A stretch of DNA of 64,000 bases from assembly GCF_003704095.1 (NCBI RefSeq), contig NW_020845578.1, forward strand, positions 248,001-312,000, given 5' to 3'. Below are positions 34,881 to 62,800 of this stretch, piece by piece. Numbering within the stretch: the first letter of the stretch is position 1; the number at the start of each line of letters is the position of its first letter. Under the pieces are notes generated by a model. That model was given only the letters and a program-made list of their open reading frames with translations, ran no database searches and was not told where the DNA came from. Both the position numbers and the translations under genes were made by a program. The DNA comes from Pocillopora damicornis (taxonomy: Eukaryota).

Positions 34881-35677
34881 CATTTCATACACGAACGAAG
34901 TGTTCACGAGAAGATCTTTTTATGAGTCGAACTTCCCTTTCATTCTTCCTCTTCGAAAGACTGAAAGGCAGCTTTCTTGTTTGTATCCGGTAACATATTG
35001 CACGCTGGGTAGAGATAGAATATTGTACAAAAAGACAAAATAACGTCAATTGTCATTTTGATTCAAGAAAAAAAAAACCAAGAAACAAAACAAAACAAAA
35101 AGCGAACAAACGAAAGAACCACAAACAAGAAAACAAACCACAAAACCCGAGGTAATTGCTATCGTGTAGCAGTCAACTTGATTTCACTGATTTTATCGGA
35201 AAATGTCAATCAGTTGTTAGAAATTAATACTCTTAGTGAGTTCATTCAGTTATTCTTAATGCCAGTCAATAAACAAAACAAAATATGAAAAAGATGGACA
35301 AGAAATATAAAAAGAGAGAAAAAACGTTCTCTAAAATTGAGTAAAACTTTATTGTAGTTGCGTCATATTCTTATTTCTTTGTACAGAGTAAGTCCATAAT
35401 GCTTAGTATCACATTCTTATTCACAGGAGAAACAATCAAGTATTCATAAATAAATTTGTAGTAGTTACGTTACTTAAATAAATTGCACTGGCAAACGACG
35501 TGAAAAAGCCAACAATTTAGAAATTTAGAGTCTTAAACATTTAAGGGATTGGGAGTAGACCCAAAAATTATGTTCCAAGAATATAAAGAAAGTATTCGTA
35601 GCCTCTTAAATAAGACAAAGCAATCGAGCACTATGTAAATAATTAAAATTTCAATTAGTGCCATGGAAACAACTGTC

Positions 35678-38600
35678 TTACAAGATACTGCATGTTTTCG
35701 ATTTCTTGTCTTTGTTTCTTACTTTTCCCTCACTAGTTGAATCTTTTGTTTGAGAAACCTTACGTTCTGGTGTTATTAGTTTATCGTTTTTCTCGGCAGC
35801 TAAGTCCTTGTTATTGTTATTTGCATCGCTGTTGTCTTCCTTTGAGTCCATCATTGCTAAAAAATGAAGAAAGAAAATTTGTAATCTATCTACAATACAA
35901 TTCTAGTTACCTCCAGTAATAAAAGAGTATGCATAACTGAAGTAGCAGGAATGCTATTGACAACAAATAGCACAGTAATGCTTCGACCCGAAGAGTAACA
36001 GTGATCATACGGTGCAACGATTACATTGGGAGATGGAGGCTAAATCACTGGAACATTTTCACTTGTCTGAAAAACATCCATACTCTGTAAAAAGGGTCTG
36101 AGGTACACCGCTTGTGAGCCCTTGGTAACAGGTCCATTGACATATAGACACAAAAGATCCATCAGATCATAGGAGTGCGTGGCCAAAATAGAATGAACTC
36201 ATTCTCTAACTATTTTGATTAATCGTTTAGTCACCAATCCTCCATACAACGAAGGTTGGCATTCTGATTAAAGATTATTATCAACAAAGTAATATTCTCT
36301 ATGGTATTCCTTACGATTTTTTCAATAAAATGTGTTATTATCACGCCAATCAGAGACTGATCGGGGCTTCGCTTGGGTACAATTACACCTTCACACGTAT
36401 TGAATATGAAACGATCTTTGCAGTAATGAACACTACTTGAGCAGTAGTGAAAATAAGCCCTGAAAAAAAATTCAGGACTGTGCAGGATTTGACCCCATGA
36501 CCTCTGCGATACCAATGCAATGCTCTACCAACTGAGCTATGTGAAATGCAGATAAAAACGTGAATATGAACGCGATCTTCGCAGTAATGAACGCTACTTG
36601 AGCAGTAGTAAAAATAAGGCCTGAAAAAAATTCAGGACCGTGCAGGATTTGAACCCATGACCTCTGCGATACCAATGCAATTCTCTACCAACTGAGCTAA
36701 CAAGCCAACTGGGAGCTGGTTGTTATGTTGGTTCCATAAAAACCCGTTAAGTGATGAATAAATGACAGTGAATATATCAAAATCATATATGTGAAATGCG
36801 GATAAAAACGTGAATATGAACGCGATCTTCGCAGTAATGAACGCTACTTGAGCAGTAGTGGAAATAAGGCCTGAAAATAATTCAGGCCTGTGCAGGATTC
36901 CAACCCATGACTTTTGTGATACCGGTGCAGTGCTCTACAAACTGAGCAAACAAGCCAACTGAGAGCTAGACGTTATATTGGTTCCATATAGACCCGTTAA
37001 GTGATGAATAAATGACTGTGAATATGTCAAAATCAACTTCTTCACTTCAAAATTGTGTGTGTTTGCTCGAGCATGAGGTATATTGCGCTCCACAAGACGC
37101 TTTTTCTGTCACGACATCCAGTGAAGAATTATGTGCAAATAGACGATGACGAAGTAGCGGGCAAACTAGACAGCTGCAGGATGGAGTAAGCAATCAAAAA
37201 AGCCAACATTTAGCCCCCGTCCTCCCCCCCCCACCCCCTCGTCTATCGTCTACTAGCCAAGCACTCCAACAAATGACAATAGTATTGATAGGGTTCCAAC
37301 CTTCTCGAGTGTTCTTATCCGCCAAGGCCAGCCAGTTGTTTTTGTTGTTAACACATCCATCATAAAGAGGTTTCAGACAAGGTTCCAAGTCATAAAATAA
37401 CTGCGGGAAAAGAGCGCATTATAAAGCTAGGCCAGATGACATCACGACATTAATTTAAGTTCAAGGCAGATCAACTAAACAGTTTACCCTTTACAAAAAG
37501 CACCAGTGAACCCTACCTGATACACCGGCATACAGATGAAGTCGATAAAACCAACTTGCATCTTTGGGAGCTCATCTTTCTTTTTCCTATCCATCATTGG
37601 CTATAACGACACCATAAATGCAGGTAAGTAATATTATATGAAACTGTACAGAATGTGGTTCATATGATTGCTGAGAAAATAAATTTCATACCTAGTTCAG
37701 AACCTCAAAGGGCCACAGAAAACAATTTTATTTAACTTTAAAAATGATAAAATAGATCACTTGTCTGCGGAGAAAATACCTGATTCAAGAAATATTAAGT
37801 TCTTACTAAACGAGCGTGAGAGCCGTACTGAGGAATATTGACTTGAAGTCGTGGCAGTACGGAGCGAGCGTAGAGAGGTCCGTCCAAAAAATACCGAGGG
37901 CCAATATTCCCTAGTGCGACTCGAGCAAACGAGGTTTGTAAGTAGTTCATTATACGGCACTCGGAAAAAACTTGCTTTAAATTTCCCGGCTTTCGCGAAC
38001 GAAATACACGCCTAATGTCCGTCTCCGTGGAAAGGGTCCGACCAAATGAGAACCAATCAAACGCTTTACCTCAGGACTACCTTGCCATGCAATTTAATTG
38101 AATTGTACGACACTTCAAAGCATAATTTTGTGATGGTCATATAAAAGCAGATCTACCGTTCACAGATTTACGGTTTACACCTCACAGCATAATTTTGTGA
38201 TGGTCATCTACAGACAGATCGACGGTTCACATCGTGAAGATTGCATCTTCCTTAAAAATTAATAGGTTACATGATACTTACAATAGGTTCAGAATTGAGT
38301 TGTAATCTCTCCAGGTCACCTTGTTCGAAAAACTCGCTTGCAACTAGCTCAGCTACCTGTTTAAAGATTTACGATTTAAAAAAGCCTTCACAAATTCTAT
38401 TCAAAGGCGACCCATTTTAAAACCTAGAATTGTATTCGAATTCGAGGATCAGGTCAGCGGCTACTCTCGAACCATGTTTTGGTGTGGATCCCGCGCGAAA
38501 GAAAAGTCTCAAGCCAGCTCTAACAGTTATTTTTTCTCGAGAGCCCACGTATCACAGCAAGACTCGCGAAAAAAAGGCAGAGAGCAATGAAACTGTTGGT

Positions 38601-59890: not shown

Positions 59891-62800
59891 ATGGACGACC
59901 AGCACCTAAAAGCGAAGAGATATGGAGTTGAAGTTTTTTTGTCCAAAGAAAATCCCGAGTTAGCCCCAGAGTGTCCTCACGGTAGGTCATGCGCCCATTT
60001 TCTGAGTGTCGACTCTGAAATATGATTGTATTGCAAGCTGAAGTGCATTAATACGTCTCATCTTTGATTTGTAGCTGCCTCTTTATTAATTATTATTGCT
60101 TTAGGATTTGTTGAATTGAATTCTTGATGTCGAACATTTGTGGTTTAAAACATAAAATTAGAAGCTTATTTTAAAGTATCAGGACTAACCAAACCAACAA
60201 CCAAAAAGCAGTGCTTTTTATTGTGTTTTCGTTGTAAGAGCTGTTCTTCAGCTGTTGTATTGTTGAAACAGTGGCGAAAGAAAACATACTTAAAACGCCA
60301 GCCATTGTTTCACTCGCAAATTTCCAGCGTAGCCAAATGTTGTGGCATCCAAGGCTCGCATTTGATTTGCTATCTGTGAATTTCTTTGATTATTGACCAA
60401 TCAGAATGTCTGGTTTGTTACTTTCTTTGCACTGGATTAACCCTCTTCTGCATTATATTACCTGAAAACTGCATTTATCTTAACCAATCAGAACTGAGTA
60501 ATTTTTTCATGTATGTTATTATTATGGTAACTGCACAGTTCTTTTTACATGACTTTGCTTTGTCCCAGTGTTGACTCTTTTTGCAACAAAATGTTATCAG
60601 CTGAATCTATTCACTGCTGTATGGGTCACAGTGTGGTTGTCATGTGATAGATCCAAACTTGAGATCCCCGGTGGCATCTTACAATTTTATACTCACAAGA
60701 ATTTGGCTTTAACAGTAATTGAAATATGACTCTACCAACAAATACATGGCAGTTATCGCCATGTATCTCTTGCCTAAAATCACTTTCACATGGTAGAATC
60801 GCCTCTTTACACATAACTGCTAATCATCCATGTGATTACACTTGTAAGGTAAAATGACTCACTAAACAATTGGAGTTGTGTGGCAATAAATATTTCTTGA
60901 TTGTTCTACTTTTTTTAATCTGGTTCAATAGTAACTTACTAAAGTGTTTTGTGTTACATAGCGTTATCACTGCAAGGAAAGTTCCTATTACTCAATTGTG
61001 TCATAAATCTACTTTCCTAAGTAAAAGTATACAAGTATTGTATTGTAAATATACTATCTTGATCAATGAATAAAGGACAATTGAATGAGGAATGAGAAGA
61101 GTCAATGAGAAGAATCACTTGACCTATGAATACTCTATACCTCGCATCAAGTGTTGTTCATACTGCATTCTGCTATTTGGGATCAAACATTTTTGAATGG
61201 GGAAAGTTCTCCTTTTTTTTTTTTAATTTTTAGTTGTTTCATCTCCCTTGATAAGATCAACAACTGTCCTTGGGTGGCAAAAAGCTTAATTTTTTTCATT
61301 AATTCCTTGACTATGAAAGAAAGATTCAGTGCAGATCTACATTTTTTGGTCAATATATTATTCTCATTCCCTCAGAAGTAACCATATGTAAATTATTATC
61401 TCTGCTTTGCCTTTAAGGACCAATGCTCCTGTTTGAAAGATTTTACAAGGATGGTCGGTTACCCCGCAGGTTCTATGCCTGCTCAGCATCCAGAGACAGA
61501 AAACACTGTTCATTTTTTCAGTGGGAGGGAGATGTATTGTCAGAGGCTAGGAAGGAGGCTCATCAAGGAATGATACAAACTTTCAGACAGTCACATAATG
61601 AAGCCTGTTTAAGATACTCTAGCATTTTCCATGAATCAGATAATCTTCAAGGGAAGAAAAGTTTTCTTTGTCACTCTTGTGGCCTGCTGTTTCAGCATAA
61701 CCAAAAGAAAAATCATCTGTCACATGATTATGAAGAAGCCGTTGATTTGTCCAAGCCAACTCTCATACTGAGACCAAAAGAAAATGAAAAGACACAAGCA
61801 GTATGTATCATGAACAATGTATGTAAATGACACACTAACATGGATGCTGTGTTGTAGTATCGGGAATGAGTGAAACTAGCCCACATACATTTGACTTTCA
61901 GCCCCCTTTTGAACACTACTCTGACATGCACACCATACCTGTCCATTGATAAATCAGACCAGTTCCTTAATTGATGTAATTCAGTCCCTCCATTATACTC
62001 TCATTGATCCTTGCAATGTCCCTAGTGCCCCTATTTTACTGCATTTCGATTACATGATTGTATAGTGAATGCTTCTATTACTTTGCACTGGTGCATGTAG
62101 ATGATTATTTCTTCTTCCCTTTTAGCAATACTTTTTTTCAAGTAAGACAACACAGTTCCTCATTTGTCTACTTAAGGAATTAGGATTTCACAATGTGCTA
62201 TGTGTAGGCACACCAAGGTATGTGTATTGATTCATGTTTTATTAATTTATTTATGTATTTGCAATATTTAGACAAGCTAGTCCAGTTCAGCTTTAAAGCT
62301 GGTTTGAATCCTTTGGTTCTCTACTCTTTGCATGAGTTCTTTTATATCCCATGCTAACCAGAACAGAGAAGATGCAGGAGATGGGGCCTATGGTTTATGG
62401 TCCTTATCCTTGAACAGTAGAATGTCTAACCATTGAAGGAAGTTGTAGCAAAGGCAGTACATTCTTCTCTGTTACTTTAATATGCTGAGGGTTGGTTCTG
62501 CGCTCTACAACATGAGTGAACCATGCATGGTGAAGTGAATTTTTTCTTGTTTACATCACTGTTGCTATCTTATGAGGTGACTGGGTTGATTTATTACATT
62601 CATATGTCCACATAAGGGTCTATTCCACACTTTCTTTTCTATACTAAAAGAAAAAAATCATGATGACAAATTTAATTTGGTAAACCTGATTAATATCATC
62701 TAATGTAACTGCATTGTACAATTTCAAGGGATGTCATACTCCCACCAGGTGAAACGTTTCGTTAATGTCACAATAATACTTACACTGGTAGGAGATGTAC

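Follow-up and report, generated by a model that had tools for sequence, protein, structure and literature searches.

A gene encoding a phosphodiesterase with two GAF domains was identified on the minus strand of a 64,000-nucleotide stretch of the Pocillopora damicornis genome (contig NW_020845578.1, positions 248,001 to 312,000; assembly GCF_003704095.1), which is referred to here as the window. The gene runs from 55302 to 35678, contains 22 coding exons, as the initial annotation had counted, and encodes a GAF-GAF-phosphodiesterase of 869 amino acids. It is very probably the pocilloporid orthologue of a prenyl-tailed, GAF-regulated, cyclic GMP (cGMP)-type invertebrate phosphodiesterase that is represented by Drosophila Pde6 and the 'PDE5' of urchin sperm flagella, and its product is predicted to be lipid-anchored. 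The span 35678-38356, to which the initial annotation was attached, comprises the last four coding exons. That annotation described a GAF phosphodiesterase with PDE6-like and PDE5/11-like segments, whose tail is polybasic and ends in CaaL, and proposed a cnidarian as the probable source. The Pfam domains, the tail sequence and a 99.8% identity to a protein of Pocillopora verrucosa bear out the observation, the product being a GAF phosphodiesterase of the PDE5/6/11 type, and its first interpretation is partly supported.

The exon model was built from a tblastn search of the Stylophora protein XP_022796615.1 (P0175) onto the window, together with a splice-site search. P0175 was reached through a representative search with exon 1, which gave a starfish protein, and a word search, which gave coral proteins. 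The joined 869-amino acid model was used for identity counts and for the tree; database searches used single exons, P0175 or the P. verrucosa RefSeq protein XP_058944495.1 (P0442). The model is identical to P0442, which also has 869 amino acids, at 867 of 869 positions and shows 91.4% identity to P0175. Both the gene and its tail had thus been annotated before, in the nearly identical protein of the congener. Pfam analysis of P0442 as a 99.8% identical proxy placed GAF domains at residues 140-272 and 305-453 and PDEase_I at 559-792 (291 bits), giving the domain order GAF-A, GAF-B, PDEase_I, and exon 1 of the window itself gave a GAF match. The NK..F..DE motif is kept in both GAF domains in an alignment of 17 sequences (A1). 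In the PDB alignment of P0175, the glutamine of MQVGFID, the glutamine of FFEQGD and the catalytic histidine and aspartate sites match the cGMP-selective arrangement of PDE5.

Exon 1 (54682..55302; amino acids 1-207) carries an N-terminal motif, an RRKS site and the first half of GAF-A, and is supported by the Pfam GAF match and the model. Exon 2 (52052..52141) continues GAF-A and rests on tblastn to P0175 with a phase-consistent GT-AG model. The tblastn and splice model likewise supports exon 3 (50292..50360), which holds the NK..F..DE motif of GAF-A, exon 4 (49954..50043), exon 5 (49221..49361), which begins GAF-B, and exons 6, 7 and 8 (48311..48375, 47301..47364 and 47035..47082, respectively). 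Exon 9 (46417..46492) has a GC donor, and the peptide across its joint exactly matches P0175. The intron that follows is GC-AG (donor GCAAGT at 46415-46416), the sole exception to GT-AG, which was found in 20 of the 21 introns. Exon 10 (45930..45997) contains the NK..F..DE motif of GAF-B and is followed by exons 11 (45730..45822) and 12 (45390..45440), the linker to the catalytic domain in exon 13 (44862..45008), the start of PDEase_I with HNWRHAFNV in exon 14 (44222..44329) and the metal site in exon 15 (43678..43787); these exons were assigned by the tblastn and splice model, with Pfam support for exon 14. Exon 16 (39800..39887) encodes a PDE5-like segment identified from the model and a PDB search. 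Exon 17 (39341..39441) is supported by the model and an RNA joint, exons 18 (38707..38848) and 19 (38282..38356) by RNA joints, and exon 20 (37517..37600), which holds the invariant substrate glutamine and has its best PDB score with PDE6C, by RNA joints and a PDB search. Exon 21 (37301..37400) ends the catalytic domain in phase 1, according to the sequence, RNA joints and the model. Exon 22 (35678..35856) encodes the 58-residue tail and the stop codon. It is supported by an RNA joint and by the same tail in P0442 and in a transcript-derived protein cluster (P0393).

Intron 15 (39888-43677) is large and contains a gap of Ns at 41940-42039. Intronic microsatellites at 44750-44850 and 39560-39720, composed of TA/CA and ATT-type runs, give rise to long spurious open reading frames of isoleucine, tyrosine, cysteine and valine repeats.

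The end of the gene has the structure that the initial annotation proposed, a last exon that is spliced in phase 1 and ends in a polybasic stretch and a CaaX box. Exon 21 ends in ACT CGA GAA G at 37301, followed by GTTGGA, and a pyrimidine tract and AG precede 35856. One base of exon 21 is joined to two bases of exon 22, so that the latter is read as (G)CA ATG ATG GAC ... AAG AAA TCG AAA ACA TGC AGT ATC TTG TAA, with the stop codon at 35680-35678. The polybasic stretch (35693..35725) was read from the sequence and contains six lysine or arginine residues in 11. The CaaX box C-S-I-L lies at 35681..35692, with the cysteine codon at 35692-35690. The last exon had been described as absent from the list of open reading frames; its frame is in fact listed.

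Public runs were searched with the last exon and the 3' untranslated region (3'UTR), and 13 RNA runs matched, all of them coral or marine metatranscriptomes. The contigs of four of these runs, which are whole-colony metatranscriptomes from three studies, were mapped to 35450-39500. The joint 35856|37301, which the initial annotation had predicted, was found in all four runs; it skips 1444 bases and has CT..AC on the plus strand, that is, GT..AG on the gene strand. A joint was counted as firm when its shorter side had at least 31 letters. The shorter side was 100 letters in the X6 contig and 94 letters in the X11 contig (2147 nucleotides, from exon 17 to the 3'UTR), whereas X1 and X3 had a side of 28 letters, slightly below the threshold; the joint is thus firm in two studies and has a 28-letter side in a third. 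X11 carries two substitutions beside the joint, by which Arg809 is replaced by Gln. Further RNA joints in the span are 37400|37517, 37600|38282, 38356|38707 and 38848|39341. The depth of the spliced form was 21-126, against 0-6.5 in the bins of the last intron outside a repeat, and intron contigs were 10-30 times shallower. The transcript-derived cluster P0393, with 73 members, has an identical tail. The dominant transcript uses the terminal exon ending in the polybasic stretch and CSIL, and not another terminal exon lacking it. Read-through of exon 21 (...CWLF*) is at most a minor form, because spliced contigs are far deeper than intronic ones.

Other introns of the mapped region showed different coverage. 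In the polyA runs of study P1, unspliced contigs over introns 19 (37601-38281) and 18 (38357-38706) had roughly a third to a half of the depth of spliced contigs (25 vs 47 and 16 vs 41, respectively), far above the share of the last intron; they could reflect intron retention or another transcript. The last intron contains three successive copies of a tRNA-derived repeat on the minus strand at 36400-37000, in which ARAGORN predicted a tRNA-Thr(GGT)-like fold at 36634-36706. RNA depth over this repeat was 250-1600, far above that of the flanking exons, with many loose ends. The repeat looks like an abundant, transcribed family of short interspersed elements that is not part of the phosphodiesterase gene.

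The tail is widely distributed among relatives of the coral protein. A C-x-x-x end was found in 103 of the best 120 matches to the starfish protein and, after the relatives of P0175 had been added, in 138 of 160 members of the clade, referred to here as the CaaX clade. Basic residues directly precede the cysteine in 129 of these 138 members, and the last residue is leucine or isoleucine in 105. A C-x-x-x end occurs in only 2 of 118 members of a sister clade whose proteins are named 'PDE11-like'. The cysteine at the fourth-last position is invariant in the 17 aligned clade members (alignment A1, 17 species), and the pattern K/R-x-S/T-K-x-C is conserved across cnidarians, deuterostomes and protostomes. 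Anthozoan tails were found in Stylophora, Oculina, Acropora, Montipora, Exaiptasia and Nematostella (RRSKMCAVV), and other cnidarian tails in Hydra (NSKTCSML), Clytia (CSLL) and the scyphozoan Sanderia (CSLM); cnidarian orthologues lacking the CaaX box would have spoken against the initial annotation. Bilaterian tails occur in sea stars, sea urchins, acorn worms, amphioxus, molluscs, an annelid, a nemertean and insects, in which the protein is named 'phosphodiesterase 6'. Because the cysteine is invariant in 17 of 17 sequences and the CaaX end is found in 138 of 160 members against 2 of 118, the tail is not a chance feature. On these counts it is a near-universal conserved feature of the invertebrate clade and not a coral novelty. 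A search of the PDB with the 58-residue tail alone gave no meaningful match.

PDE6 subunits carry a C-terminal CaaX box, and PDE6C ends in a geranylgeranyl-type KKSKTC-aaL tail. PDE5A is not known to have a CaaX box. The coral tail had been presented as a PDE6-like hallmark; it is real and expressed, but it is common to most of the CaaX clade and had been annotated before.

Two further genes of the subfamily were identified in the P. damicornis genome. The paralogue on contig C3905 (G000:C3905:~91700-111200; L011, L012, L015 and L016) is the orthologue of a Stylophora 'PDE11-like' protein (P0307). It starts with MANCC, a possible acylation site, has an exact RKISASEF before GAF-A and lacks a CaaX box. 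The paralogue on C2024 (G000:C2024:~434500-452500; L013, L014 and L017) apparently ends in NKHQPIT* and also lacks a CaaX box. More distant GAF phosphodiesterases on C1450 and C1382 served as outgroups.

A tree of 37 rows and 836 columns was computed with IQ-TREE under LG+C20, and support is given as ultrafast bootstrap/SH-like approximate likelihood ratio test. Its rows cover the invertebrate clades and outgroups. The CaaX clade received a support of 100/99, with cnidarian (97/84) and bilaterian (99/94) subclades, and follows the species tree. The window protein adjoins that of Stylophora (100/100), Drosophila Pde6 and urchin sperm PDE5 fall in the same clade, and Trichoplax lies within it on a long branch. 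The 'PDE11-like' clade received 88/83. A third clade (parB; 99/100) contains the C2024 paralogue, a horseshoe-crab 'PDE11A-like' protein and an amphioxus protein. The coral CaaX gene stands apart from both other clades and does not group with PDE11; firm placement of the gene in PDE10/11, named earlier as an outcome that would count against the proposal, did not occur.

Hamster Pde11a (P0126), in which only the first ~306 residues are genuine and the remainder is a mis-prediction, was dropped as a PDE11 anchor of the tree because of a 9.6-unit branch and was used for local scores only. The best match of its GAF-A piece was the C2024 (parB) paralogue with 129 bits, ahead of the PDE11-like clade with 102 bits and the CaaX gene with 84. 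Vertebrate PDE5A, PDE6 and PDE11A were absent from the best 150 matches of exon 1 in the representative search, and from the best 120 matches of the Acanthaster (P0005), Ciona (P0014) and Stylophora (P0175) proteins. Motif searches of the collected relatives gave no PDE6-type protein, and a comparison with the ESM Atlas did not discriminate the subfamilies.

Similarity to the vertebrate families was read from PDB scores. With full-length P0175 as proxy, PDE5A scored 732 bits, PDE6B 550, PDE6C 549, PDE6A 536, PDE2A 396 and PDE10A 249. The initial annotation assigned different segments to different families. The catalytic segment in exon 20 does have its best score with PDE6C (38 bits, against 28 for PDE5A and 24 for PDE10A), but its motif MMDR..K.D.LP.Q is also present in the coral PDE11-like paralogue, an outgroup phosphodiesterase of the P. 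damicornis genome, PDE10A and 21 PDE11-like relatives (molluscs, cnidarians, nemerteans and a few arthropods). The motif is ancestral and not specific to PDE6, because PDE11-like, outgroup and PDE10A sequences share it. The Asp/Asn difference between MMDR and MMNR was considered as a marker uniting PDE5A with the PDE11-like clade and was rejected as not clean (89 Asn vs 21 Asp in that clade). The 19-residue N-terminal motif matches PDE6C (VEKYL..FAK.YF.RK, 18.8 bits) as had been suggested, but the match to PDE5A is longer and scores higher (28.5 bits). The segment in exon 16 had been called PDE5/11-like, and in agreement with this it scored 36 bits with PDE5A and also matched PDE10A, with no PDE6 chain at E<=0.01. 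A PDE6-type divergence of the catalytic core was found neither in exon 16 nor in the full-length scores.

The relation to PDE5 and PDE6 is more clearly seen when the invertebrate clades are compared with each other. The best PDE6 score and the PDE5A score in the PDB were 550 and 732 bits for the Stylophora CaaX paralogue and 470 and 777 for its PDE11-like paralogue, 547 and 678 for the amphioxus CaaX paralogue and 433 and 766 for its PDE11-like paralogue, and 735 and 974 for a profile of the CaaX clade (A1, 17 sequences) and 638 and 1101 for a profile of the PDE11-like clade (A2, 17 sequences), respectively. In all three comparisons, PDE6 is closer to the CaaX clade by 80-115 bits and PDE5A is closer to the PDE11-like clade by 45-127 bits. 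The cross sums differ by 125-233 bits, whereas about equal sums would be expected if both vertebrate genes came from one clade; bit scores, however, are not additive distances, and unequal N-terminal coverage contributes to the PDE5A differences. The motif RK[IL]S[AGS] before GAF-A is found in 105 of 118 members of the PDE11-like clade and in 0 of 160 members of the CaaX clade. PDE5A carries RKISASEF. The coral CaaX gene is without such a protein kinase G/A (PKG/PKA) site and has only RRKS at about residues 96-99.

The CaaX clade probably represents the pre-vertebrate form of the PDE6 lineage, the chances being about even between this and a PDE5/6 pro-orthologue. A broader scheme, which is tentative and has somewhat less than an even chance, is that three GAF phosphodiesterase lineages already present in the cnidarian-bilaterian ancestor gave rise to PDE5, PDE6 and PDE11, one to each. 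The prenyl-tailed clade would correspond to PDE6, the RKISA-bearing 'PDE11-like' clade, which includes Drosophila Pde11, to PDE5, and the C2024/horseshoe-crab/amphioxus clade to PDE11. This scheme is suggested by the reciprocal PDB scores, the CaaX box common to the clade and PDE6, the distribution of RK[IL]S[AGS] and the hamster Pde11a scores. It fits the PDE11A, PDE5A and 'PDE6-like' groups listed in cnidarians by Picciani et al. 2022 (PMC9776813).

Several points weigh against an assignment to the PDE6 lineage and against the proposed lipid-anchored enzyme. The overall similarity of the coral protein is highest to human PDE5A and not to PDE6 (732 vs 550 bits), and exon 16 and the N-terminus are PDE5-like in the PDB scores. 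The PDE6-lineage view is drawn from score comparisons and shared characters, rather than from a tree containing vertebrate PDE5, PDE6 and PDE11. PDE6 has been placed as originating in chordates by Lagman 2016 (PMC4906994) and by Muradov 2007, as the latter is cited in PMC4948711. Lipidation, the membrane site, cGMP preference and the cell type are predictions. A soluble tail-less form may also exist, because some predicted isoforms in molluscs and P. verrucosa are without the CaaX tail.

Alternatively, the CaaX clade could be the PDE5/6 pro-orthologue, in which case PDE5 and PDE6 would both have arisen in chordates from one prenylated ancestor, PDE5 would later have lost its CaaX box and the coral enzyme would be no nearer to PDE6 than to PDE5. 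This is a serious possibility, although a somewhat doubtful one. It is favored by PDE5A as the best PDB match, by the PDE5-like exon 16 and N-terminus, by the RefSeq names 'cGMP-specific PDE' for the coral protein and 'sperm phosphodiesterase 5' for the urchin orthologue, and by the derivation of PDE6 from a PDE5/6/11 ancestor in chordates, as given in PMC4906994 and PMC4948711. The reciprocal scores, in which the two clades lean toward different vertebrate families, and the restriction of RK[IL]S[AGS] to the PDE11-like clade argue against it. The earlier proposal of a PDE5/6-ancestor-like enzyme holds insofar as the clade is the nearest to PDE6 by score among the invertebrate lineages, but the protein is most similar overall to PDE5A.

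A second alternative concerns the tail, which could be a sequence motif only, the enzyme being soluble or the CaaX box convergent and uninformative on PDE6. A CaaX box with basic residues is a short and easily evolved motif, and isoforms without it are predicted, as mentioned above. This explanation is nevertheless quite unlikely in view of the invariant cysteine and the K/R-x-S/T-K-x-C pattern kept from cnidarians to protostomes and deuterostomes, the prenylation of the Drosophila orthologue (Day et al. 2008, as cited in PMC4595086), and the PrBP/delta-family gene that the genome contains. Membership of the gene in the PDE11 or PDE10 family is highly improbable. Some close matches, such as P0153, are named 'PDE11-like', but the tree splits the gene from the 'PDE11-like' and parB clades (100/99), separate paralogues represent both of these clades on C3905 and C2024, the genuine part of hamster Pde11a is best matched by parB, and PDE10A scored only 249 bits. 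It is scarcely credible that the CaaX exon is minor or spurious and that the real protein is the read-through product ending in CWLF*. The open frame does continue beyond the donor of exon 21, and shallow contigs cover the intron, but in the four mapped runs, which come from three studies, the depth of spliced contigs exceeds that of intronic ones 10- to 30-fold, and RefSeq and transcript-derived proteins of Pocillopora and Stylophora share the tail.

The gene itself adds nothing new, and its value is that of a data point on the under-discussed origin of photoreceptor PDE6. The range of the tail, from corals and jellyfish to amphioxus, and the reciprocal scores suggest that a lipid-anchored PDE6 lineage is far older than vertebrates; the same evidence suggests that the automatic names 'PDE5-like' and 'PDE11-like' mislabel invertebrate clades. 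'PDE11-like' may be a misnomer for the C3905 paralogue. If the three-lineage scheme is true, a membrane-anchored cGMP phosphodiesterase of ancient origin was taken over by vertebrate phototransduction, with P-gamma as the only addition, and the published chordate origin of the PDE6 catalytic subunit would need revision.

Under the standard CaaX rule, a box in which X is leucine is a substrate of geranylgeranyl transferase I. From CaaX biology and the fly and urchin orthologues, Cys866 of the coral enzyme would be geranylgeranylated, SIL removed and the cysteine methylated. The lipid, together with the six lysine or arginine residues among the preceding 11, would anchor the enzyme as a dimer to the cytoplasmic side of the plasma membrane or of the ciliary membrane. 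Binding of cGMP at a GAF domain would tune the enzyme; cyclic-nucleotide binding by the GAF domains probably regulates it, because both keep NK..F..DE. A PrBP/delta protein would shuttle the lipidated enzyme. Three exons of a gene of this family (PF05351), of either the PDE6D or the UNC119 type, were detected at G000:C464:552240-554291 and together span profile positions 2-155 (101, 61 and 44 bits). Like its urchin orthologue in sperm flagella, the coral phosphodiesterase would end cGMP signals in the vicinity of cGMP-gated channels and membrane guanylyl cyclases. In sea urchins, PDE5 is an abundant flagellar enzyme that terminates cGMP signals at the membrane, where it lies beside the CNGK channel and the receptor cyclase (PMC7024835). 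A receptor guanylyl cyclase is also present in the flagella of stony-coral sperm (PMC6787079). None of the evidence connects the coral gene with photoreception, and the orthologue studied best, that of sea urchins, acts in sperm flagella. Because the urchin orthologue is flagellar and coral sperm have this cyclase, the most concrete guess is that the coral enzyme acts in sperm or other cilia, and the tail may matter for coral reproduction.

Upstream of the phosphodiesterase gene, an open reading frame of 135 amino acids on the plus strand (61423-61830) contains a cysteine- and histidine-rich stretch (CSASRDRKHCSFFQWEGD) and may be a zinc-finger exon that belongs to a neighbouring gene.

The closest known protein is P. 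verrucosa XP_058944495.1, annotated as 'cGMP-specific 3',5'-cyclic phosphodiesterase', which has the same start, exon content and tail. It differs by P86A and R809Q, the latter of which is also present in the RNA contig X11. The sperm flagellar PDE5 of sea urchins (S. purpuratus 'sperm phosphodiesterase 5' and Arbacia PDE5) belongs to the same clade, shows 56% identity and has the CaaX tail KNKSSLCSVI, which ends in isoleucine, whereas the coral tail ends in leucine. Drosophila melanogaster Pde6 (CG8279, 'PDE5/6') shares the clade, the GAF-GAF-PDE architecture and a polybasic CaaX box with a final leucine (KKRSKLCALL), but shows ~52% identity and is ~250 residues longer, with extensions at both ends. 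This enzyme functions in cGMP handling in the Malpighian tubule. Day et al. 2008 (Biochem J 414:363; cited in PMC4595086) showed that it is prenylated and described a prenyl-binding partner and a C1128S mutant.

Cone PDE6C (PDB 6x88, 9cxg) shares the GAF-GAF-PDE architecture, the best score of exon 20 (38 bits) and the N-terminal VEKYL..FAK.YF.RK. Its overall score is lower (536-549 bits against 732 for PDE5A), and the coral catalytic core keeps PDE5-type residues. No transducin coupling is known for the coral enzyme. P-gamma (PF04868) had no match at E<=1 in the 234-Mb coral assembly (234.35 Mb, 4393 contigs) by a six-frame search, which is weak for a short split gene, and this agrees with the finding of Lagman 2016 that invertebrates have no P-gamma (PMC4906994). 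Human PDE5A (PDB 3bjc, 9lss) is the best full-length PDB match over both GAF domains and the catalytic domain, with the glutamine pair of the cGMP pocket conserved, whereas the C3905 paralogue has RKISASEF exactly and scores higher to PDE5A than the coral CaaX gene does.

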